Sequence record: MW272540.1
Reading direction: 5' to 3' (one strand)
DNA: 64,000 nucleotides
Shown: piece after piece, positions 2,246 through 43,168 of the stretch
How the letters are laid out: the number at the start of each line of letters is the position of its first letter
How positions within the stretch are numbered: the stretch's first letter is position 1
The notes under the pieces: model-generated
Told to the model about the DNA's origin: nothing
Database searches by the model: none
What the model saw: the letters and a program-made list of their open reading frames with translations, nothing else
Position numbers and translations under genes: made by a program

Positions 2246-2758
2246 TCATATCCCCAATTTAGGAAAAGGACCAGACGAATTAACGTAAGCCCTAAATTTT
2301 GCAACCCACCCATCGAAAGAACCAATTATCGTCATGGTTTCCACTTTCTGAATTGTGTTTCTAACAGGTAGTGTCGGAACAGTGATATCGTCATAAACCA
2401 ACGTCTGTGTGTATGTTACAACCCGTTTAAGCTCACTTGGTGGGTCGAACGCCACGAGGTCACAGGTAGACGGTTCAGGTAGGTTAGCAAATGCGTTTGT
2501 TTGGGTTATCTGTAGCGTTGTCCTATCTCGATAGCGCAAAACTAAGTCAACTTTTCCATCAAAATAGTCATTGACATGACCGTGTAATCTGTTACCATCT
2601 AACAAAATCCCATCGGGCGATAAATCCTCCGATGGAGTTACAACGAAGCTAACAAACTGTTCAGACGGGGTTAGTGTATAGCTAAATGTGCTATCAACCT
2701 GAGTCTCCCCATCAAATATAGTGGGTTTCCAGTTTGTTGGTATGTTTATTTGTGCCAT
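2246..2758 (-). CDS. gp5.1: gp5.1-like conserved protein
   Basis: NRLHG, TYTQTLVYD and W..KFRAYV resemble T4 gp5.1; position between gp5 and PAAR; late promoter at 2781-2789. Confidence 0.7.
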   Translation of the reverse strand: MAQINIPTNWKPTIFDGETQVDSTFSYTLTPSEQFVSFVVTPSEDLSPDGILLDGNRLHGHVNDYFDGKVDLVLRYRDRTTLQITQTNAFANLPEPSTCDLVAFDPPSELKRVVTYTQTLVYDDITVPTLPVRNTIQKVETMTIIGSFDGWVAKFRAYVNSSGPFPKLGI

Positions 2759-2780
2759 ATAAAAAATCCTCCATATGGAG

Positions 2781-2789
2781 TATTTAGGG
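2781..2789 (-). promoter_or_regulatory. Late (gp55-type) promoter CCCTAAATA
   Basis: tatttaggg on + strand, upstream of gp5.1/5.4/25/6. Confidence 0.65.
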
Positions 2790-2815
2790 CTGTTTATATA
2801 AAAAGAGGTTATAAA

Positions 2816-3160
2816 ATGGAATCTTTCCAATTTAAAAGTGTAGAATCGTTTATTGCTTTTAAGCATAAAAGCGTGGACAATAACAAGATCGGAGACAAAA
2901 TTGGGCTTGGTCCATTTGTTGTTACAAATTTCGTACATGGTAGAATTTTGGGTATTCAAGATCAAGAAGAACTCGAAGAAGAATTTTTCCCAATCTTTGA
3001 TGAGGATGAGGTTAGAATGTATCTGACTAAATTATCTGAAAACAAACAGTCCAACTTAGAAGATTATAAAGTTAACGCACTTAAAAACGAATTACTGGTT
3101 ATAAAAGCAAACTTAACCAAAGAGATTCATAGAATCGACACTCTACTGGATAATATGTAA
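2816..3160 (+). CDS. Hypothetical protein, opposite strand to the baseplate genes
   Basis: ORF with SD (agagg) before ATG 2816. Confidence 0.75.
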   Translation: MESFQFKSVESFIAFKHKSVDNNKIGDKIGLGPFVVTNFVHGRILGIQDQEELEEEFFPIFDEDEVRMYLTKLSENKQSNLEDYKVNALKNELLVIKANLTKEIHRIDTLLDNM

Positions 3161-3467: not shown

Positions 3468-5286
3468 AGTTAATATTCACAGTAGAACCACTAATCTCAG
3501 TTGTACCAGCAGAAGTGATAAGACTTTGTGCAGCTTGAGATTTATAATTTCCCCCAACTGTCGATGTAAAATTCCCACCGACATTTAGATTATAATCCCC
3601 ATCCACCGAATTATCACAGTTACCAGCCACTTGAGCAGTTAGGTTTCCTTCTATATTGCTATCTACGTTCCCGTTTACAGTTTGAGTAACGTTACCTTTA
3701 ACTATTTGGTCCATATTTCCATGTATAGTTTCAGTAACATTTCCTTTCACAACTTGGGATAAGTTCCCGTCAACTTGTTGAGTGCAGTTACCCATAACAT
3801 AAACAGTCGCATTACCTTCCACAACCGCTTGATAATCACCTTTCACGTTCAAATATTTATTGGCTAAATCTATTTCGAAATTCTCACCATATATCTTAGT
3901 TACTTGACGACCGTCACCAGACCACTCTATAAACGTCCCAGAGGGGTGTTTTCTATGGTATCTCTCAGCACCCGGAGTATCGTCGAACTCTTGAACATGC
4001 CCAGATTCAGACTCGTATACGTGGTTGTATGGGTATTGAGCCCGATACGCACTCTTTGGTTCTTCAAAAAGCAAACCATCATCGCGGGGAACTGGGGGAA
4101 CTGACGGATCTTCTTCATCGTCCAAAGGAACTGGATCGGAAGTGACAGCAACCATCCTCATAAACGACGCAGTTGGAATATTAATACTGTCAGTATCCAA
4201 AGACATGGTTCTTAAAGATATGGGGGGTGTCGGTTCTTGTGGGACCATCACACCATAAGATTCTAGGTTTCCGGTTAACACGATCCTAGAAACTCGATTT
4301 GCCCGTCCGGGGGTTTGTTTAGCCCAGAGTGAATCTAACATCCCCTGTTGGGCTTCCTTCCATCGTTCGTTGTACATATGATCAAGCGTAGTTCTAAACT
4401 TAGCTAGACCACCGGCACCCATCTGAAAGGCCATGTTCTCTAAAGCCATCTGTCTAGACCGGTTAACTTTGACATAAACCTTTCTGATGTTTTCAAATCT
4501 CATCATATCAGATCTGGTTTTTTGGATATCCTCACTAAACAGCTTTGAAACGTCCTCTGGCGATATTGTTCCACCTTTGACAGGATGACCTAGCTGTTGG
4601 GTTAGAATCGCGTCTATACGCGCTACGTCTCTTGTTTTCTCATGAATAATCAAGTGACCAATCCCGATGGTAGGATATCCCAAAGAATCCAAATACCATA
4701 CGTTTCTAACGCCTTCATCACCCTTCAGCATTTTTTCTATGGTGAAATTCGGGTCATCGTCTTCTGGGATCTCATCTATGGGTCTGTCATCTGGTGCAAC
4801 TGCAATAGAAGAGTTTTCATCTTGAGTATATACACCAAGAGGCATACCGTCAATTGATGGGGGGGCACTCCCGTTTATACTATCACCCTTCTGACCACCA
4901 CCCGCTAATATATTCACGTCATTTCCGATATATCTCGGAAATTGACCGAATGGGTCACAAAAACCTTTCAAAGTATTTGGTTGTTGAACATAGGATCCGG
5001 GGATTGTAAAAAGGATAAGACCATCTTGTTTAAATGCGTCCCTGAATATCCCACCAACCCAACTACCTTCAACTAAACCAGTCGGACTATCACCAACCCC
5101 AGATATAGATGCTGATGTAGTTGGTAGAGCCGAGTGAAACCAAAGTAATTCATCTGTTGGGATACCTAGCAAATCATTTTTTGATTTTTGGTCCGTGTGT
5201 ATCCCCATTACACGGACCCTATATCTACCTTGTTTTAGAGGGTCGAATCTATCCTCAACCACCCCAAAAAACCATTCTAAATTCAT
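3466..5286 (-). CDS. gp5: Baseplate hub / tail lysozyme gp5
   Basis: OB-fold WFFGVVEDRFDPLKQGRYRVR, T4-lysozyme domain (DEG..YLDSLGYPTIGIGH), YPYNHVYESESGH and V.G repeats of the beta-helix. Confidence 0.97.
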   Translation of the reverse strand: MNLEWFFGVVEDRFDPLKQGRYRVRVMGIHTDQKSKNDLLGIPTDELLWFHSALPTTSASISGVGDSPTGLVEGSWVGGIFRDAFKQDGLILFTIPGSYVQQPNTLKGFCDPFGQFPRYIGNDVNILAGGGQKGDSINGSAPPSIDGMPLGVYTQDENSSIAVAPDDRPIDEIPEDDDPNFTIEKMLKGDEGVRNVWYLDSLGYPTIGIGHLIIHEKTRDVARIDAILTQQLGHPVKGGTISPEDVSKLFSEDIQKTRSDMMRFENIRKVYVKVNRSRQMALENMAFQMGAGGLAKFRTTLDHMYNERWKEAQQGMLDSLWAKQTPGRANRVSRIVLTGNLESYGVMVPQEPTPPISLRTMSLDTDSINIPTASFMRMVAVTSDPVPLDDEEDPSVPPVPRDDGLLFEEPKSAYRAQYPYNHVYESESGHVQEFDDTPGAERYHRKHPSGTFIEWSGDGRQVTKIYGENFEIDLANKYLNVKGDYQAVVEGNATVYVMGNCTQQVDGNLSQVVKGNVTETIHGNMDQIVKGNVTQTVNGNVDSNIEGNLTAQVAGNCDNSVDGDYNLNVGGNFTSTVGGNYKSQAAQSLITSAGTTEISGSTVNIN

Positions 5287-6521
5287 GATACCACCTTACC
5301 CCGAATATCAGAATCAGAAATCAATTCTATATTCATAAAATATGTTTCTCTTGTTAATACATGGTTTATGGAATTAACCAACCAATGACCAGCATCCTTA
5401 GATGTCATATCACCGTTCATATCACCAGCTATAATATTTACCACACTACCGCTTTTAATATCGGAGTTTCCCGCGATTTGAATAAGCATACGCTTTGCAT
5501 TAAGAGACACACGATTCGTTGCTCTAATACCTAATGAGTTTCCATTAGACCCCATATTGATATACTTATACATCTGGTCTTCAGTTGTAAAAAGAACACA
5601 GGTATTTCTTTCCGGCTTAATATCCCCACCATACCAACTTTCTGGATTTAGCGTTGGATATATTTCTTTGACGGTCTGATAATCCTGATATTTATTTGTG
5701 TATAACTTTTTATCGATACTCATAGAGTGAACATCGACACCGAGACCACCTAATCTATATTGTTCTGGGATATTATATCCCTTCACACGTTGCATTTTTA
5801 TAATTTTGTTATACATCGTGGTATCGTGAGTTGCTTCAAATATTAAATCAACTACCGGGTCTTCAATAAGAAGGGAAGTCCCGGATTTAAAATTTATACC
5901 GTCGATATTTTCAAATAAATAAAAGTTGCTATCGCCTTTCGCATTAGGCTCTGACGATTGGGAAGATTGTGCCAAGTGATTTATAACAGCCAATGGTGTC
6001 ATATTTGGAATAACAATATCCCGATTGTATAAAGTAGGTTCAATTTTCATCAATTCATCTGTATAACCAATAAGCTTAAGCATATCTGAAATAATAGAAT
6101 GAATAGATGTATTAGAATAACTCTTACTTACTTTCCTATACTCGTTATTATGTTCTTCCTCAGAAACAAAATGTATTCTAATATACTTTTTTGTTTGTGT
6201 CTCAGGCGAGGTTATATCTTCGTATCGCACTACTTTAAAATTTTTAGAAAACGTTGTTGCGTCTTCACCATTCAAATGAACGGACCTAAAGCTTATTTGT
6301 ATCTTTTCATCACCACGAGGGTTTATCGAGTTTATGAAGTTCATAAAATCAACAAAATCTAAAGTACCTTTGAAGAGACCTTGTGAGATCCCTTCAGTGA
6401 TGCTTACAGATTTAAAAATCTCGGATAAATCAAACGCAGTTGGTTCAGAACCCTGATAAAAAGCAATACGATCAATCGTAAAGTTTTCATAAGCCGCCGT
6501 ACTTCGTCTACTTATTCCCAC
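5283..6521 (-). CDS. gp27: Baseplate hub protein, gp27-like
   Basis: 412 aa directly before gp5; IVIPNMTP, FYLFENIDGINF and GHWLVNSINH hub motifs. Confidence 0.65.
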   Translation of the reverse strand: MGISRRSTAAYENFTIDRIAFYQGSEPTAFDLSEIFKSVSITEGISQGLFKGTLDFVDFMNFINSINPRGDEKIQISFRSVHLNGEDATTFSKNFKVVRYEDITSPETQTKKYIRIHFVSEEEHNNEYRKVSKSYSNTSIHSIISDMLKLIGYTDELMKIEPTLYNRDIVIPNMTPLAVINHLAQSSQSSEPNAKGDSNFYLFENIDGINFKSGTSLLIEDPVVDLIFEATHDTTMYNKIIKMQRVKGYNIPEQYRLGGLGVDVHSMSIDKKLYTNKYQDYQTVKEIYPTLNPESWYGGDIKPERNTCVLFTTEDQMYKYINMGSNGNSLGIRATNRVSLNAKRMLIQIAGNSDIKSGSVVNIIAGDMNGDMTSKDAGHWLVNSINHVLTRETYFMNIELISDSDIRGKVVS

Positions 6522-7074: not shown

Positions 7075-8141
7075 TATTTTTTACCTCCATTACCAGAACC
7101 ATAAGAACCAAAGAAAAATTCCCCAGTATCTGGTGTTCCAAGACCTTTAGTAAGTTCTTCCCAATAATCCCTATAAACTGGACGAAGTTCTGTTACAGTC
7201 AATTCAAAATCGATTGCAATAGAATCCGCAGCACTAGCGGAGAAGGTATCATACAATTGGTCTGGGGTTTTGTTTATTCGAATATTAGATATACCAGCAG
7301 GCCCCATCGCAAATTTCGGGGTATATCTAATTTTTTGGGTTTGGTCTTGACTGACACGTTCCTCTATAAACCAAAGAGGCGGAACTTCCAAAGACGTATA
7401 ACCTTCACCAGAGGCAATTTGAGATTGAGTATCCAATCCAAGATCCGCAAGCGATACAGCCCCACGGTTTTCAGCCGAGCTAAGAACCATAAATGTTTTT
7501 ATGATCTGACCGACTTCCTTCAATTCAGCAAGAGACCTTGGTCTGAATTGGAAAAGAAAGTTTTGTTGACGCACAGATGTACCCTTATACATCTGTGCAC
7601 TACGGTCCCCTAGAACGTTACCAGTGACCTGTGAGTTGAATCTTTGGGTCAATCCACCCACTTCTACGGCAAGCTTCTGTAAAGCCGCTTTACCAGTCGC
7701 AGAAGCGGCATTACCAGCCTTATCCATCATACCATCTTGGTCTGATGCGTTAGCACGGTAATTCATCAAAACGTCTTGGATGAAACCACCATCATTCGAA
7801 TCATAGTTATGACTTATATTTTCGTTCATGTTGGGCATATATAGTTGAATTACAGCTAATGTTTCTTCATTGAAACTACCCTTAACCGACCTCATTGACC
7901 TTTCTGTGATGTCGTTGTTACTCAAACCCCCAGTTGTTGGTTTTACCGCATAAAACACTAAATAGGACGAATGTCTATTATCGCTTCCCTTCAATGTCAA
8001 TGGATATTGTAACGCACTAATTCCTTTTTGTTTGGTGTTTTTATTTTCGAGGATCAGAGTACCACCCTCAGTTTTTACCCCACCAGTACCAGCTAGAACA
8101 CCATCAGCGGCTCTTGAGGCATCTACAATACTAACCTTCAT
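7074..8141 (-). CDS. gp48: Baseplate-tail tube cap gp48
   Basis: LQYP, QLYMP, MYKGTSVRQQNFLFQFRPRS..E motifs. Confidence 0.85.
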   Translation of the reverse strand: MKVSIVDASRAADGVLAGTGGVKTEGGTLILENKNTKQKGISALQYPLTLKGSDNRHSSYLVFYAVKPTTGGLSNNDITERSMRSVKGSFNEETLAVIQLYMPNMNENISHNYDSNDGGFIQDVLMNYRANASDQDGMMDKAGNAASATGKAALQKLAVEVGGLTQRFNSQVTGNVLGDRSAQMYKGTSVRQQNFLFQFRPRSLAELKEVGQIIKTFMVLSSAENRGAVSLADLGLDTQSQIASGEGYTSLEVPPLWFIEERVSQDQTQKIRYTPKFAMGPAGISNIRINKTPDQLYDTFSASAADSIAIDFELTVTELRPVYRDYWEELTKGLGTPDTGEFFFGSYGSGNGGKK

Positions 8142-8678: not shown

Positions 8679-9673
8679 TATTTGAAATCAATGAACGTGC
8701 TGAAACTACGGCAGAAAAAAGACAAAGGCGAGATTGGATAGAGATCGGCGCAAAGTTCATGGATGCTAGAAAAAAAGCACCTACCATGACAGCAAAAAAA
8801 TTTGCAGAAGAAAATGGACTTAATTATGAAACGTTCAGTCGGGCAATGCGTCGTTTTAGAGATGATATTAAAAAATATTATTCTCTTACGAACCCGAACA
8901 AGAACAAACAGCAATGGATTGAGCTTGGTGTAGACTATTTAACAAAAAAAGAAAAAACTAATATATCCCAAGCTGAATATATAAAAGCAACTGGCTTGAA
9001 CCAAGAAACTGCTTCTAGAGCTTTCCGAAGATTCAAGAGTGATATCATTCTCGCAAAAAAATTAAAAGATGCGAAAGAAACCGGAAGACGACTAACAAAC
9101 AACGAGAAATACCAGTTGATGTTACAGGATTTCCGAACTAAAGTTCGTCAATATGAGAAAGAACCACAAAAATCAGAGAGAAAGTCTATTGACTGGTTCA
9201 ACACTTTTATTAAAAAGAACGTGAGAGGACATAGGGTTTCAAAACCACAACCGGGAAGGTTGTATACTTTTGCGTATGACGCAAAACATAAAGCAACTCT
9301 ACCATATTGGGATAAATTCCCACTTATTGTATATCTCGGGTTGAGTACAAAACACAGAGGTTTGATGTTGGGCTTAAACCTTCACTATATTCCAGTGAAA
9401 GCCCGCAAAGAATTTATGGAAGAACTTTTAAAACACGCAACTACAGAACGTATAACCAATAGAACAACCCTAAATATAAATTGGGGGAAGGTCAAAGGTA
9501 TGAGAGGGGTAGATCACATGATCAAAGCGTATTTGCCTAATCATGTTAAAGGTCCATTTATGGAAATAAAACCGCAAGATTGGAGTTCTGTTATCAATCT
9601 TCCGACTCAGCGTTTTGTTTCTGGTATGCCTCCTAAGACCTACAATACTAACAAGGTTTGGAGTTCATATTAA
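8675..9673 (+). CDS. gp2: DNA end protector gp2, with duplicated N-terminal module
   Basis: PQPGRLYTFAYDAKHKATLPYWDKFPLI, GLNLHY. Confidence 0.95.
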   Translation: MIFEINERAETTAEKRQRRDWIEIGAKFMDARKKAPTMTAKKFAEENGLNYETFSRAMRRFRDDIKKYYSLTNPNKNKQQWIELGVDYLTKKEKTNISQAEYIKATGLNQETASRAFRRFKSDIILAKKLKDAKETGRRLTNNEKYQLMLQDFRTKVRQYEKEPQKSERKSIDWFNTFIKKNVRGHRVSKPQPGRLYTFAYDAKHKATLPYWDKFPLIVYLGLSTKHRGLMLGLNLHYIPVKARKEFMEELLKHATTERITNRTTLNINWGKVKGMRGVDHMIKAYLPNHVKGPFMEIKPQDWSSVINLPTQRFVSGMPPKTYNTNKVWSSY

Positions 9674-10611
9674 TGTCACTAATACCACCAATTCCAAGTA
9701 TAGATTCCCTAGTGGATGGGGCTCTTACTTTCGGAGAAGGAATCTTAAACGAAGGGGATGCAAGTGAGATCCCCGATTTAACCAGATTTATGCGGAAAGT
9801 AGAAAACACCGATTTGGCAAGACCTAATATGTTCATTGTCCGATTTGGTGATTTCCGAACCACAATTTTTAGTGATGGTGTTTTCGATAGCGACTTGCCT
9901 ATTTTCCCGGATGGATCGGGTGTCAGTACAAGCGATGATCTATTTTCTGGATCTAGCTATACTTGGCATAGGATACAAGATGTTGCTTTGGGGCAAGCTC
10001 ATAAAATACTCACACCAAGTATGAAAAGAATATTTGGTGCTTGGGACCCATCTTTAATACGAATTATACCGGGTGCTGGTGAAATTCTAGACGGTTTCTT
10101 AGGTTTAGATTATGATGTCAATAAAGACTTAGCTTTAATGGTTAAATCAGTTTCATTGCCATCATCAACTTTAGAAACCCAGATCAATAGAATTGATAAA
10201 TTACCCAGACATGAGGTAAAAGGTAGAAACTATGGGACAATGACCATGACGTTTTATTGCTCTCCTTCATATGAAGAACGGGCATTAATGCTAACATGGC
10301 AAAACACCATTGTAGACCCGAAAAATGGTAGGTTTGGTTTCTACAATACTTACGCAAAAGATATAGACGTTATCACGCTTGATAGACACGGTGTAAAACA
10401 ATCGACTGTACACAACGTAGGTTGTTTCCCTATTGAAGTTGGTGAAGTTCAACTTGACTTTGAGAATAATTCTCAAGTGTCTACGTTCACAGTAACCTTT
10501 GCTGTTTCTACTACTACCCATGTACCAACTAAGGGTACAGAAACCGGTATAGATTCAATAGAGAGTATCATCAGACGTACTACAGGTGTTCTAAACGCTA
10601 TTAAGAACTAA
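9673..10611 (+). CDS. gp54: Baseplate tail-tube initiator gp54
   Basis: DLARPNMF, VKSVSLP, WQNTIVDP, FPIEVGEVQLDFENNSQVSTFTVTFA. Confidence 0.88.
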   Translation: MSLIPPIPSIDSLVDGALTFGEGILNEGDASEIPDLTRFMRKVENTDLARPNMFIVRFGDFRTTIFSDGVFDSDLPIFPDGSGVSTSDDLFSGSSYTWHRIQDVALGQAHKILTPSMKRIFGAWDPSLIRIIPGAGEILDGFLGLDYDVNKDLALMVKSVSLPSSTLETQINRIDKLPRHEVKGRNYGTMTMTFYCSPSYEERALMLTWQNTIVDPKNGRFGFYNTYAKDIDVITLDRHGVKQSTVHNVGCFPIEVGEVQLDFENNSQVSTFTVTFAVSTTTHVPTKGTETGIDSIESIIRRTTGVLNAIKN

Positions 10612-10655
10612 GATAAACCCGGATCTAACGATCTGGGTTTTTTGTTATCTAAAAC

Positions 10656-10771
10656 ACGAACGAAGTGAGTCGCCGGAGGCGGTTCGCTACGCTCACAGAT
10701 TACTTTCTAATTATAGATCTTCTATATAAATACTTATAGAAACTTTATAGTTTGATTGCAAGTGAAACTAA
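10656..10771. repeat. Copy 1 of a two-module intergenic element (GC-rich hairpin + AT-rich 68-mer with TATAAATA)
   Basis: 10704-10771 matches 42625-42692 at 59/68; 18-mer 10656-10673 is the exact reverse complement of 42606-42623. Confidence 0.9.
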
Positions 10772-10881
10772 TATTTTTTGATTAAATTTTAACCGTATAA
10801 TAGATCAATTAAGTCTCGTAGCTGGATCTGTTATACTAGGTAGGTAAATACTCTTATAATGAGATAATAAGGATTCTATAA

Positions 10882-11658
10882 ATGTCTACGATAGATAAAA
10901 ATGTTCTTCTAACTGCTATGAAGAAGAATGTTCAAGAAACTAAGGTGAAGCTCTCTAATGGTAAAGAGATCCGGATCCGTGCTTTTGTAATGAAAGAAAT
11001 GAAACTCCTTATGATGGCAAATGAAGCCGGTAAAGGAATTGAAGACGCAATCATCCAGATTGTTAAAAACTGTATTCTTACAAAGGGTGTAGTTGTAGAA
11101 CAACTTCCTATCTTTGATCTGGAATCGATTTATATTGCTTTGTATCAGCTTTCTAAGGCATCTCCATACATTCCAGTTACTTTTACTTGTGCTAATGAAA
11201 TTCTTGATGAGAATGGAGAAATTCAATATGACAAATACGGTAACGTGGTTCTATGTGAGAATGAAATTAAAGTAAATTTGAATCTTAAAACCGCTAAACT
11301 CTCGGAAGCACCATCAAACGAAATCGTTTTGAACGAGAATATGAAGATTATCATGCGATATCCGAATATTAGTGAGGTTGAATATTTCAATATCGATAAA
11401 GAATCGGAACTTTTTAATCTTATAGTTCGTTGTATCGACGAGGTTCATATGGGTTCTGACATTGTTAAAGTTGGGGTTGATATACCTTATGAGGATATCG
11501 GGGAAGTAATGGAATATGCAGATGACAGCGCCATTATAAAAATGAGTAAGTTTGTTACTGGAATTCCTCAACATACCCTAAATATACCAGTAAAGTGTAA
11601 AAAATGTGGTCATGAAGAAATAGTAACGCTAACGGGAGTTGAAAGTTTTTTCGTATAA
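10882..11658 (+). CDS. gp26: Baseplate hub assembly protein gp26
   Basis: RAFVMKEMKLL, LPIFDLESIYI, MRYP, C-terminal CKKCGHE..L.GVESFF. Confidence 0.9.
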   Translation: MSTIDKNVLLTAMKKNVQETKVKLSNGKEIRIRAFVMKEMKLLMMANEAGKGIEDAIIQIVKNCILTKGVVVEQLPIFDLESIYIALYQLSKASPYIPVTFTCANEILDENGEIQYDKYGNVVLCENEIKVNLNLKTAKLSEAPSNEIVLNENMKIIMRYPNISEVEYFNIDKESELFNLIVRCIDEVHMGSDIVKVGVDIPYEDIGEVMEYADDSAIIKMSKFVTGIPQHTLNIPVKCKKCGHEEIVTLTGVESFFV

Positions 11659-11822
11659 CCCTCGTTAACCATACAATATTTGACCATTTCAATACAGTTT
11701 ATAAATTAAGAAAAGATGGATGGTTACATTCAGATTTAGAAGAGATGACACCTTTTGAATTTGGAGTATACGTCCAGCTTTATCTTCATGAACTTAGAGA
11801 AAAGGCAAAAGAGGGTGAATAA
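11646..11822 (+). CDS. gp51: gp51-like hub assembly/chaperone segment with no canonical start; probably reached by -1 frameshift from gp26
   Basis: Open frame FFRITLVNHTIFDHFNTVYKLRKDGWLHSDLEEMTPFEFGVYVQLYLHELREKAKEGE*; stop overlaps the gp29 ATG; T TTT TTC slippery site at 11646-11652. Confidence 0.75.
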   Translation, partial: FFRITLVNHTIFDHFNTVYKLRKDGWLHSDLEEMTPFEFGVYVQLYLHELREKAKEGE

Positions 11823-13714
11823 TGATTGGCGAGGGAAAAAACAAGGTCTTAGATCCATCGATAAAAGACCTTAAAGAGTCTCTTGATATAGTCACGGATT
11901 CTATGCTTACGCTCGATGACAAAACGGAAAAGTTGACAAAATCAACCACCGATTTGACTGCTGCTTATGATATTAATTCTGATGCTAGTGTTTCTTTATC
12001 TCAGGAACAAGAAAAACTAACTAACCAGATTAAAAGGCAGCGTAAGACAAATATCAATAGAGATAAGGTAAACTCCGATCTCGAAAAAGAGCGCATTAAA
12101 GAATTACAGACGATTCAGGATTCCAACGAAAGACGGAAGAAGCTTGAAACTATTCTTAATGATCAACAACCTTTGGTTGATTACTCTAATAATATTCCTG
12201 TTGAGGATGATTCCGGAAATAAAAAGAAGAAACCTATTCCGGAAGAAACAAGAGAGACCTTAGAAGAATTTATTAAGAGAGAAGTTGGAGATAGAGACGA
12301 ATTTATCGAAAACTTTAAAAAGGAAAACCAGAAGACTGGTAAATTTATTCGAGAAGTTGCGGCAAAAGCTAACATAATTAATCGAATGAAAAACTCCGAG
12401 ACGTCAGCAACTGCCAAAATATTGGGTCATACCATGAGTGCTGGTATGGGTATGATAACTGGAACAATTGATAATTTATTATCGTCAATCCCCGGTTATC
12501 GTGAAACTGCCAATGCTACAAAATTTGTTGCCGGGTCTATCTATGATGCACATAAAGCCAGAAAGGAAAAGAACCTTGACCGGAAAGCAGAAAAGACTTA
12601 CGAAGCGAAGAAATCTGATGCAGTTTCTAAATTTCAACAAATCCCAACCCCCGGAAAATCTCCAACCGAAGAAAAAATAAAACAAGAGAGAGATTCGAGG
12701 GATAAGAAAAAGGAATCTGATGCAAATTCAAGAGAACGAGACGCAAACGATAAACGTCATAAAGGATTAATGTCTGTTCTTAAAGGACTTCAAATGTCCA
12801 TGATCCTTGGTAAGCTAATGTCGTTTATAGGGCCTATAATGGCTATTGGTGGTGGGTTGATGGCTGCTGTTACTGGTCTAAGTGGTTCAGTTGCTGGTAT
12901 TGGTGCGGCGGTTGCGGCGGCTCTTGGTGCTGTAGTTGGAAAGATGATCGGAAGTATGACCGACCTATTTAAAAAATTGCCGGGTTTTAGTGGACCTAAA
13001 ACAACTCCGACAAAACCGACTATAGATCCAAAAACAAATAAACCAACCACAGAACCACCGAAGAATGGAAAACCAAATACTCCGAAACCTAGCGGTGGTC
13101 CCACTATAGAAACAAAGCCAACCAGTACCCCGAAACCGGGTGTTCCTGATGCGGCTGGTAAGGCGGGGAAAACCGCAGGTAAAGCTGGTGCAGGGAAAGT
13201 TGCCGCAGAAGCTGCATCTAAATTCCTTCGGTCTGGTGGTGCTCGTAAATTGGCTGGCTTTGCTTTAAAACTTGGCCTTAGAGCCATCCCATTCGCTGGT
13301 GCTGCGCTTTTAGCTTACGACATATACTCAGCCATTAAGGATAACCCCGAAATGGTAGAGAAGGGTATGGAAGCCGCCAAAGGGGCTTTTGGTAATGTTG
13401 GTGAAGTATTAGGTATTTCTTCTGCTAATGCGTCGGATGAACCTGTTGATGGTAGTAAATTGAAACCTGTTATTAAGTCTGGTGAGGACCAAGCCACATC
13501 GGCTAGGATCGAGGAAGGTAATAGGAAGGTTGAACAATTTAGAGCCAAACAGGCAGAAGAAGAGAGGAAACGGGAAGAAAGAAGGACAGAAGCTATGTAC
13601 GCATCATATAACACACAAACATATAACAGTATGACGTCTGTGTTGCCGTCTGGTTTTGGTCCATATCATCCAGAAACCCCTGTAGGATCCTATGGAGTTC
13701 AACCGATATCATGA
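11822..13714 (+). CDS. gp29: Tape-measure / baseplate hub protein gp29
   Basis: 630 aa, coiled-coil N-terminus, Gly/Ala hydrophobic segment, RAIPFAG motif; follows gp26/51. Confidence 0.75.
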   Translation: MIGEGKNKVLDPSIKDLKESLDIVTDSMLTLDDKTEKLTKSTTDLTAAYDINSDASVSLSQEQEKLTNQIKRQRKTNINRDKVNSDLEKERIKELQTIQDSNERRKKLETILNDQQPLVDYSNNIPVEDDSGNKKKKPIPEETRETLEEFIKREVGDRDEFIENFKKENQKTGKFIREVAAKANIINRMKNSETSATAKILGHTMSAGMGMITGTIDNLLSSIPGYRETANATKFVAGSIYDAHKARKEKNLDRKAEKTYEAKKSDAVSKFQQIPTPGKSPTEEKIKQERDSRDKKKESDANSRERDANDKRHKGLMSVLKGLQMSMILGKLMSFIGPIMAIGGGLMAAVTGLSGSVAGIGAAVAAALGAVVGKMIGSMTDLFKKLPGFSGPKTTPTKPTIDPKTNKPTTEPPKNGKPNTPKPSGGPTIETKPTSTPKPGVPDAAGKAGKTAGKAGAGKVAAEAASKFLRSGGARKLAGFALKLGLRAIPFAGAALLAYDIYSAIKDNPEMVEKGMEAAKGAFGNVGEVLGISSANASDEPVDGSKLKPVIKSGEDQATSARIEEGNRKVEQFRAKQAEEERKREERRTEAMYASYNTQTYNSMTSVLPSGFGPYHPETPVGSYGVQPIS

Positions 13715-15700: not shown

Positions 15701-16714
15701 ATGTCTAAAATGTTCGACCAGTTGCTTGAGTCTATGAACCAAGCAATTGCCCTTAAAACTCTTGGGTTGTCTTCCAATTTTACTGAAGAAGAACTCAAAG
15801 CCGCTTATCGAAAAGCAGCAAAAGACAATCACCCAGATCGCGGTGGTAGTACAGAAAAAATGCAGTCTGTTAACTCTGCATACGAAGAACTTAAAAATTC
15901 CGGTTCTTCTGCGACTCGTGAAGCCTCTTGGGCTCAACGAAAGCAGAAACAAGAAGACGAAAAACGTGTTGTGACTAATTTTGTTACCCACATGTTTGAT
16001 AAGTTTTTTGATATCAATGCTTATCTCGATTACTTCCAAAAAATGAGTGGTAAAAAATTCACTTTTGAAAGGAAAATCAATGTTGGTACTTGGGGAACCG
16101 CGTCTGTAGATTATAAATTTTCATCAGAAGACCGTTCTGTTTTCTTTGATCTTAATGCTATGGCTCATGTGTTTATCACAAAAGCTCTTGGTGCTGGTAT
16201 TGATAAACCGGAATTGGATAAAATGGGTGTCTTTACTGAGGTCTTGATCGACCGTAAGAAAGTAAAAATGTCTCAAAGTAATTACAATCAATCAGAAACA
16301 GAAAAGTTCATGAAGGATCCGAAAATCCTTTTCCCAGAAACAAAACTGAAAAAAGCTTTTTCGGCTGACAAGAAAGTAAAACCGCTTAAAAAAGCTGATT
16401 ATGTTCTTTTTGTTAAGAAAGAACTTGAAGGCAAACACCTTGGTGGTGATGATTTTGCTGTTGACATCGGTAACGGTTCTGTGATTTACTTCTCTCGTAT
16501 GACATGGATGAGAAAAGGTGTATGGAATATCAGTGGTCGAACTGGGACTAAGGAACGTTGGTCTGTCACTACTCCTTTCTACGAGACAGAAACTCCAGAA
16601 AATATGGACGTAATGAAAGAACTTGTTCAAACAATGAAATCTCATAATTCTTCAAATGGTCAGCAGATGGAGTCTCTTGTGAAAAAAATTATGTTGAAAG
16701 CAAACAAGACTTAA
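15701..16714 (+). CDS. J-domain (DnaJ-like) protein with unknown C-terminal domain
   Basis: ALKTLGL...EELKAAYRKAAKDNHPDRGGSTEKMQSVNSAYEEL with intact HPD; late promoter CCTAAATA at 15673-15680. Confidence 0.9.
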   Translation: MSKMFDQLLESMNQAIALKTLGLSSNFTEEELKAAYRKAAKDNHPDRGGSTEKMQSVNSAYEELKNSGSSATREASWAQRKQKQEDEKRVVTNFVTHMFDKFFDINAYLDYFQKMSGKKFTFERKINVGTWGTASVDYKFSSEDRSVFFDLNAMAHVFITKALGAGIDKPELDKMGVFTEVLIDRKKVKMSQSNYNQSETEKFMKDPKILFPETKLKKAFSADKKVKPLKKADYVLFVKKELEGKHLGGDDFAVDIGNGSVIYFSRMTWMRKGVWNISGRTGTKERWSVTTPFYETETPENMDVMKELVQTMKSHNSSNGQQMESLVKKIMLKANKT

Positions 16715-42578: not shown

Positions 42579-42692
42579 GTGAGCTATAGCGAGCCACGCG
42601 CTTGCGCGACTCACTTCGTTCGTATTTCTAACTGTAGATCTTCTATATAAATACTTATAGGGAATTTATAATTTGATTACAGATGAAACTAA
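42579..42692. repeat. Copy 2 of the two-module intergenic element (GC module inverted)
   Basis: See 10656-10771. Confidence 0.9.
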
Positions 42693-43168
42693 CCAATCAC
42701 TTTCTTTACAAGAGCACCATCAAACAGCAATCCTTTTTGTTGAGCTGCCTTCTTACAGGCTCCCATCACTTGACCGATGTTTGAACCCACATTGAGTTGG
42801 CTAATGACCTCTTTGATGTGTTCTTCATCGAACACTTTCGGGAGATAGGACCCTAGCAGTTCACGTTCAATCATCAAGTCTGTGAATTTGATGTCAGTTT
42901 TAAGAATATCCATCACTTCTTGATTGGTCATATCGTTTGATACGGATACAACCCGTTTACGGATCTCGGTAACTGCTTCGTCAATGTTTTTAACGAATTT
43001 ACGAATAACCGCTTGAACTTGCTCGTCAGTTACTACCTGATTACCGGAAGGACTTGCTTCACCAATCAGGGTTGTTAGAGCGTTGATACGAACTTTCCCG
43101 TAATGGGTCGAACGATCTTCAGATTTACGGAATGCGATTTGGTCTTTTTTGATTTTTTCAAGCAGCAT
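42689..43168 (-). CDS. GatB/YqeY-domain protein
   Basis: LLEKIKKDQI..RK, TDEQV.AVIRK.VK, E.ELLGSYLPK, NIGQVMG. Confidence 0.85.
   Translation of the reverse strand: MLLEKIKKDQIAFRKSEDRSTHYGKVRINALTTLIGEASPSGNQVVTDEQVQAVIRKFVKNIDEAVTEIRKRVVSVSNDMTNQEVMDILKTDIKFTDLMIERELLGSYLPKVFDEEHIKEVISQLNVGSNIGQVMGACKKAAQQKGLLFDGALVKKVIG

Follow-up and report, generated by a model that had tools for sequence, protein, structure and literature searches.

An evenly spaced, six-copy intergenic element in Aeromonas phage ZPAH1 and its relatives: candidate replication-origin-type sites with invertible modules

Phage T4 has at least five replication origins, which have no common sequence motif. The best defined of them, oriF (uvsY) and oriG (gene 34), span about 100 bp and consist of a promoter and an unwinding element, and oriE carries repeats (PMC3016281). 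A different type of dispersed intergenic unit in T4-like phages is the PeSL, in which a promoter is combined with a stem-loop, the relative position of the two being variable and the stems containing G-T pairs (PMC2839356; PMC4122927). The T4 origins have been mapped for decades, and how they are recognized is poorly understood. In enterobacterial hosts, REP and BIME elements (including RIP and RIB) are imperfect GC-rich palindromes of ~40 bp that follow genes in one orientation or the other, and some form inverted pairs enclosing an AT stretch bound by protein; they are present in hundreds of copies and are mobilized by RAYT transposases. Here we describe a repeated phage element that has features of all three. 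In the literature mentioning the phages that carry it we found no published account of the repeats, and the family appears to be undescribed.

The stretch of DNA analysed (the window) is 64,000 nucleotides long and corresponds to positions 166917-230916, the terminal 64 kb, of the record of Aeromonas phage ZPAH1 (MW272540.1), a T4-like phage of 230,916 bp that belongs to Straboviridae, Emmerichvirinae, Ishigurovirus; window positions 9000-12500 align to it with 100% identity. A sequence-only reading of the window had reported a two-copy element, in which a GC-rich hairpin module accompanies an AT-rich module, and had suggested a search for more copies in the genome and in relatives. Two is the correct count for the window and not for the genome: profile searches of the whole of ZPAH1 yield exactly six modules of each kind, AT and GC, each pair adjacent and all six pairs intergenic (Table 1). 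The copies are named, in order along the genome, c2, c3, c5, c4, c1 and c6. A seventh AT-module candidate, at ZPAH1 200,208, was dropped as a weak match in a region unlike the element. What had been said of the sequence at c1 and c6 was correct throughout, if incomplete. Their AT modules align on the same strand with 59 of 68 positions identical. The window contains a 26-bp identical core at 10714 and 42635 and nowhere else (0 expected from shuffles). The GC module is flipped between the loci, with its 18-nt start on the plus strand at 10656 and on the minus strand at 42606-42623 (0.03 expected), and the inner hairpins differ and both fold (cgcc-GGA-ggcg at c1, cgcg-CAAG-cgcg at c6).

Table 1. 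Positions of the element copies, of their parts at the two window loci, and of the KVP40 copies
Feature	Position	Strand	Remarks
Copy c2	near 16.0 kb of ZPAH1		
Copy c3	near 67.3 kb of ZPAH1		
Copy c5	near 110.8 kb of ZPAH1		
Copy c4	near 134.4 kb of ZPAH1		
Copy c1	near 177.6 kb of ZPAH1; window 10650-10780		
Copy c6	near 209.6 kb of ZPAH1; window 42579-42692		
Intrinsic terminator of upstream late gene (gp54-like, 9658-10611)	window 10615..10640	+	11-bp stem and T run (terminator scan); just before c1
GC module of c1	window 10656..10696	+	forward; lower stem conserved, top hairpin variable, GC-rich, GGA loop
AT module of c1	window 10704..10771	+	contains TATAAATA at 10725-10732
AT module of c1, left half-site	window 10711-10726		
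AT module of c1, spacer	window 10727-10733		
AT module of c1, right half-site	window 10734-10750		
AT module of c1, tail	window 10751-10771		
GC module of c6	window 42579..42623	-	reverse-complemented relative to its own AT module; top hairpin differs, CAAG loop
AT module of c6	window 42625..42692	+	antisense to both flanking genes
KVP40 element copies	35.9, 79.2, 129.7, 184.0, 210.0, 238.3 kb of KVP40		mixed orientation

One element consists of a GC hairpin module of 41-46 bp beside an AT module of ~66 bp. The GC module has a conserved start (CGAACG.AGTGAG) and a conserved end (TTCG.T..GCTCAC), between which lies a short GC-rich hairpin whose stem and loop vary among copies and phages, the loops including GGA, GTA, GCA, GAA, AAA, TTT and TTCG. 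Its conserved flanks permit three alternative pairings, each about 90% paired among 14 variants. Pairing of the lower stem is kept via G-U changes, and two-sided covariation is minimal, being modest and confined to the top hairpin. As RNA the module folds with -15 to -22 kcal/mol. Summed over 15 variants, the two strands reach -232 and -221 kcal/mol, about equal, and thus the GC structure is possible on each strand and as a cruciform. A strand-specific RNA hairpin was rejected in view of this equality and by the near absence of two-sided covariation.

The AT module is built from two inverted 16-bp half-sites close to TTATAAAGTTTCTATA, with a spacer of 7-8 bp between them, and ends in a conserved, non-palindromic tail, TTTGATT.CA..TGAAACTA. 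The half-sites form a nearly perfect inverted repeat in phage 65 and are degenerate in ZPAH1. By nearest-neighbour energy, all six AT modules fall in the least stable 0.03-0.33% of the 66-nt windows of ZPAH1. At c6, the final bases of the AT module overlap the stop codon of a minus-strand gene (42689-43168).

Read in the direction of the AT module, the order is GC-forward then AT at c1, c2 and c3, GC-reversed then AT at c4 and c6, and AT then GC-reversed at c5. The AT module is sense to the flanking genes at c1, c3 and c5 and antisense to them at c2, c4 and c6, so element orientation is unrelated to the flanking genes. The six sites lie between gp54 and gp26, upstream of the ndd/gene 52 block, close to inh/rnlB/gene 24, at the 3' end of gene 34, close to alc and, in an early region, close to e.6. 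Copy c1 is inside the baseplate gene cluster, among genes 2/4/54/26/3, and c5 is located immediately beyond the gene 34 homologue, at its 3' end and not within it. The uvsY gene of ZPAH1 (126,060-126,437) is 8 kb from the closest copy. Among the proteins encoded beside the copies there is no obvious candidate for a DNA-binding partner. One gene neighbouring c5 (ZPAH1 109641-110537), annotated only as hypothetical, encodes a SegE-type GIY-YIG homing endonuclease (Pfam E = 6e-29). At about 16050-16150 of ZPAH1, a long inverted repeat with a stem of ~25 bp, followed by a T run, lies next to the AT module of c2, between this module and the upstream early gene.

Gaps between neighbouring copies along ZPAH1 are 51.3, 43.5, 23.6, 43.3, 31.9 and 37.3 kb. 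Under random placement, a minimum gap at least as large as observed has a probability of 0.007-0.008 and a gap spread no larger than observed one of 0.002, values that amount to a single observation for the Aeromonas family (plus one for KVP40, below) because the relatives share one ancestral arrangement. Uniform draws and draws limited to intergenic gaps of at least 150 nt lead to this same result.

The element is confined to Aeromonas phages of Emmerichvirinae, with 20 matching records. Of 10 relatives scanned, 8 carry the element at all six of these intergenic sites, and the other two records, AS-sw and AS-zj, which are of lower quality (partial or N-containing), show five. Six copies each are present in Aswh_1, CC2, G2, AS-szw and Asswx_1. 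Phages 65 and avDM6 also have the six sites; at the one between gp54 and gp26 they carry two divergent AT modules, which surround a different pair of GC hairpins (in phage 65, positions 2517-3019 of the extracted slice). The sites are fixed across two genera, with neither gain nor loss in eight complete genomes.

Conservation in related phages, on which the sequence-only reading had made its proposal depend, is high. Between ZPAH1 and CC2 the AT modules are 88-96% identical, compared with 70-78% for the flanking genes and 34-54% for the remaining intergenic DNA. On these alignments the AT module is a local conservation peak that stands above the neighbouring structural genes. Within a genome the copies are 86-92% identical to one another, and copies of ZPAH1 and phage 65 are as similar at different sites (76%) as at the same site (77%). 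All copies of the phage 65 type carry TATTAATATA at the place where the ZPAH1- and CC2-type copies carry TATATAAATAC. By this pattern the copies evidently evolve in concert.

Individual modules are inverted in some phages. CC2, 65 and avDM6 have the GC module of c4 forward, and ZPAH1 and Aswh_1 have it reversed. The latter two phages also show an inversion at c5, which affects only the AT module and spares both the GC module and the terminator of gene 34. The GC module of c6 is reversed wherever it is recognizable, namely in ZPAH1, Aswh_1 and the CC2-type phages, those of 65 and avDM6 being too diverged for a profile call. In addition, phages 65 and avDM6 have one copy, a module of the gp54|gp26 site, in which only the palindrome core is inverted relative to its own module ends. 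Judged from these comparisons, the module flips are lineage-specific and leave the flanking genes unchanged.

Some copies coincide with breaks in homology. The close Ceceduovirus relatives G2 and Asswx_1 have a common upstream flank at c3 and different DNA starting with the last base of the AT tail, which by comparison of the two genomes is a gene-replacement junction at the edge of the element. CC2 and ZPAH1 differ upstream of c3. In the AS-sw record (NC_048674.1), 1276 bp from the right of c4 are present twice, 100% identical and inverted, at 4997-6272 and 120656-121931. The duplicate is joined at an element copy to the left flank of c2, and the record lacks the right flank that c2 normally has. 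Either an exchange between copies produced this junction or the record was misassembled at the repeat. In the AS-szw record, the sequence begins 27 nt from an element copy. Contigs from four public runs stop at the element, with loose ends that are the flanks of the other five copies, and the assembled contigs of the public runs yielded neither a new flipped form nor RNA evidence.

Searches beyond the named phages added little. ZPAH1 or a near-identical phage, with the same flanks of the six copies, is represented in contigs from two retting-metagenome runs of a single study (window 10300-11100). A scan of 185,579 bacterial species genomes with the AT-module pattern yielded neither a host copy nor a satellite copy; its one match, in a Pelagibacter MAG, is likely due to chance. 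Metagenome and IMG/VR scans contributed only phage 65-like fragments and one divergent contig, IMGVR_UViG_3300005046_000023 (7660-7830 of the extracted sequence), in which an AT module lies between two inverted GC half-modules. The divergent element is located in a 1.1-kb non-coding stretch with further GC hairpins, between divergent ORFs that lack a PHROG match.

A parallel arrangement exists in KVP40 (NC_005083.2), which has a six-copy intergenic element with a sequence unrelated to that of ZPAH1. Its spacing is as even as in ZPAH1 (P = 0.006 and 0.003). One copy is directly upstream of uvsY (238209-238314) and is composed of a terminator, small GC hairpins (including GCGAAGC), 9-bp TTAGT repeats and a promoter. 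Neighbours of the copies include alc, rnlB, gene 1|3, gp12|wac and uvsY. The presence of alc, rnlB and the gene 3 cluster near copies in both KVP40 and ZPAH1 is suggestive only. We found no paper that describes the KVP40 element.

We tentatively favour, at somewhat less than an even chance, the interpretation that the elements are orientation-independent DNA sites, most likely candidate origins of replication or sites of that type. Fixed number, even spacing, indifference to orientation, tolerance of inversion, conservation, coordinated change and low duplex stability together argue for a site that works at the level of DNA in a genome-wide process. Among such processes, initiation of replication is preferred because T4 has several origins of about 100 bp that pair a promoter with an AT-rich unwinding element, and the ZPAH1 copies would be their counterparts. 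In this scenario, the element would be a conserved cis-acting site acting on the double helix at six fixed, evenly spaced places. The AT module could serve as the docking and unwinding part for a putative phage or host factor that co-evolves with the element, and the GC hairpin module may form a stable structural boundary that functions in either orientation and on either side.

The sequence-only reading had named candidate replication origins and, as other options, recombination or packaging sites. The first proposal gains from the even six-copy spacing, orientation independence, conservation, low stability and the KVP40 analogue, and is weakened by the lack of conservation of TATAAATA, by the lack of a sigma-70 call, by the absence of a copy at uvsY and by the absence of skew. 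A regression found no replication-side GC or AT skew around the six sites, a weak test here because T4-type replication is mostly recombination-dependent. As recombination sites the copies may qualify in the sense of by-product junctions, given the homology break at the element edge in close relatives. A packaging role is unlikely, because T4-like phages package by the headful mechanism and lack pac sites.

Transcription signals in and near the element are ambiguous. The late-promoter motif TATAAATA, on which the origin proposal had partly leaned, is present in five of the six ZPAH1 copies and in the CC2 type. It is not a feature of the family, because all 65-type copies (phages 65 and avDM6) carry TATTAATATA there, and that argument for origins is lost. 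For the same reason, a T4 late promoter as the core function was ruled out. At window 10877-10884, TATAAATG matches the late-promoter motif in 7 of 8 bases and overlaps the start codon of gp26. At the two window loci, a promoter scan called no sigma-70 promoter, and the terminator scan called no terminator inside the element, calling the hairpin at 10615-10640 separately; nor did it call the GC modules as intrinsic terminators (GC stem with a direct T run). By eye, the reverse strand offers TTGCAA-N17-TATAAG in ZPAH1 and GTGCAA-N16-TATAAT in phage 65. At c2, c4 and c6, such a promoter would run in the direction of the genes; at c1 and c5 it would face bidirectional terminators and be antisense to late genes. 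Hexamers resembling a -10 box (TATANT forward, TATAAT reverse) are found at the outer ends of the half-sites, and inspection of the aligned copies by eye showed no MotA-type TGCTT box at the right distance from the -10. With neither such a box nor a good sigma-70 promoter apparent, the ZPAH1 copies offer no evident promoter to make an R-loop primer, which weighs against an origin. On either strand, a promoter would be antisense to genes at three of the six copies. The element may have promoter activity in one or both directions, and such activity leaves its length, copy number, spacing and flips unexplained.

The main alternative is that the element is a transcription cassette similar to a PeSL, with the AT module as a promoter (possibly bidirectional), the GC hairpin as an attenuator, terminator or stabilizer of mRNA, and the copies as sites of homologous exchange that shuffle neighbouring genes. 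PeSLs in T4-like phages have this composition, with parts in variable relative position and G-T pairs in their stems, and the lower stem of the GC module likewise accepts G-U pairs. All copies are at gene boundaries, often near a terminator, nearly all aligned copies have the -10-like hexamers, the reverse-strand sequences are in the sense direction at c2, c4 and c6, and in CC2 and G2 a distance of 12-15 nt separates the AT tail of c3 from the start of a gene. The break in homology between G2 and Asswx_1 at the AT edge and the chimeric AS-sw junction at a copy also fit gene shuffling. However, the copies number only six and are spread evenly instead of accumulating in variable regions; half of the sites are antisense, and modules flip in place with the genes unchanged. 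Neither a sigma-70 promoter nor a terminator was called within the element at either window locus, the reverse -10 of ZPAH1 ends in G at its critical final position, and the ordinary early promoters of the phage (TTGACA-N17-TAnnnT) do not have their sequence in common with the element. Moreover, 66 bp conserved at 88-96% identity are far beyond the needs of a promoter. We consider a role of this kind unlikely, if still to be taken seriously.

Other genome-wide roles in DNA would share much of the evidence with the origin interpretation. The copies could be strong sites of binding or cleavage for the phage type II topoisomerase or another organizing protein (similar to BIMEs), places where the sliding clamp is loaded for late transcription, or cruciforms that are cut to start recombination-dependent replication. 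Even spacing, independence of orientation, nested quasi-palindromes and a hairpin about equally good on both strands would be in keeping with such roles, and in the metagenomic relative the inverted GC half-modules around the AT module resemble two REPs flanking a binding site. Topology, clamp loading and recombination hot spots match the evidence as well as origins do. Nothing points to the proposed partners, however, and the IHF consensus is not matched by eye in the element. To our knowledge, topoisomerase or organizer sites, clamp-loading sites and cruciforms are without a sequence-specific precedent in T4-like phages, and we rate these roles as distinctly improbable. A structured RNA, transcribed from GC to AT and containing two hairpins for processing, stability or a small RNA, is suggested by the forward fold of c1 (z = -4.0, against -1.2 in reverse), the G-U changes that maintain lower-stem pairing and a UUCG-type loop at one site. 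Against it are the near equality of the two strands over the 15 variants, the minimal two-sided covariation and the absence of any Rfam match up to E = 1 in a scan of all six copies. Given that the modules occur in all relative orientations, no single transcript would contain both in constant form, and an RNA role is very unlikely. A selfish or neutral dispersed repeat (MITE-like), kept uniform solely by gene conversion, could account for concerted evolution, module flips and mosaicism junctions. It agrees poorly with sites fixed in two genera and eight complete genomes without gain or loss, with conservation above that of neighbouring structural genes, with the lack of visible terminal repeats or target duplications, and with the one likely chance match in the bacterial species genomes, and we regard it as the most remote of the explanations considered.

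If the elements are origins, T4-type phages would gain sequence-defined origins, which were never obtained from T4. A broader proposal, possible but doubtful, is that in large T4-like phages about six evenly spaced, lineage-specific modules set the starts of replication (or of replisome or clamp loading), each family co-evolving with its own recognition factor. Such modules would tolerate inversion because they are built from quasi-palindromes. The modules of the ZPAH1 family and of KVP40 are concrete, mutable sequences suited to probing origin function, the binding of a factor and the logic behind the spacing. Even if their function is regulatory, their concerted evolution and flips show how repeated palindromic cassettes change over time and contribute to the mosaicism of phage genomes. 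In addition, short-read assemblies of these phages, which are candidates for therapy, break at the repeats.

From the perspective of known systems, the resemblance to REP and BIME elements lies in a GC-rich palindrome that occurs in either orientation and in an inverted pair comparable to the half-modules of the metagenomic relative, whereas REPs and BIMEs are host elements in hundreds of copies moved by RAYT. PeSLs (RB49/phi1, T4/PST, KVP40/nt-1) likewise combine an AT-rich, promoter-like part with a GC stem-loop in variable relative position, and are intergenic, repeated and located at gene-replacement junctions. They differ in that they concentrate in hyperplastic regions, match the sigma-70 consensus and face the downstream gene, with a Shine-Dalgarno site and start codon coming next, whereas the ZPAH1 copies are six in number, evenly spaced, without a consensus promoter and in either orientation. 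The KVP40 element has in common with that of ZPAH1 six intergenic copies, even spacing, GC hairpins beside an AT-rich repeat block and mixed orientation; its repeats are direct and 9 bp long instead of inverted half-sites, and it has a copy at uvsY, the site of T4 oriF, where ZPAH1 has none.

With respect to the T4 origins, ZPAH1 has no copy at uvsY and none inside gene 34, it adds a GC hairpin module, and by eye its copies show no recognizable MotA box; the T4 origins rely on a MotA-dependent middle promoter. Its six sites have one 110-bp module in common, and an origin module shared in this way would be unlike T4, because the T4 origins have no common motif. The likeness is in number (at least five origins in 169 kb of T4, six copies in 231 kb of ZPAH1) and in design, a unit of ~100 bp with promoter-like sequence and an AT-rich, easily unwound stretch, which in ZPAH1 is among the least stable DNA of the genome. 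It extends to position as well: c5 abuts the homologue of gene 34, the gene of oriG, and c1, in the gene 2/4/54/26/3 cluster, lies near the map position of oriE.
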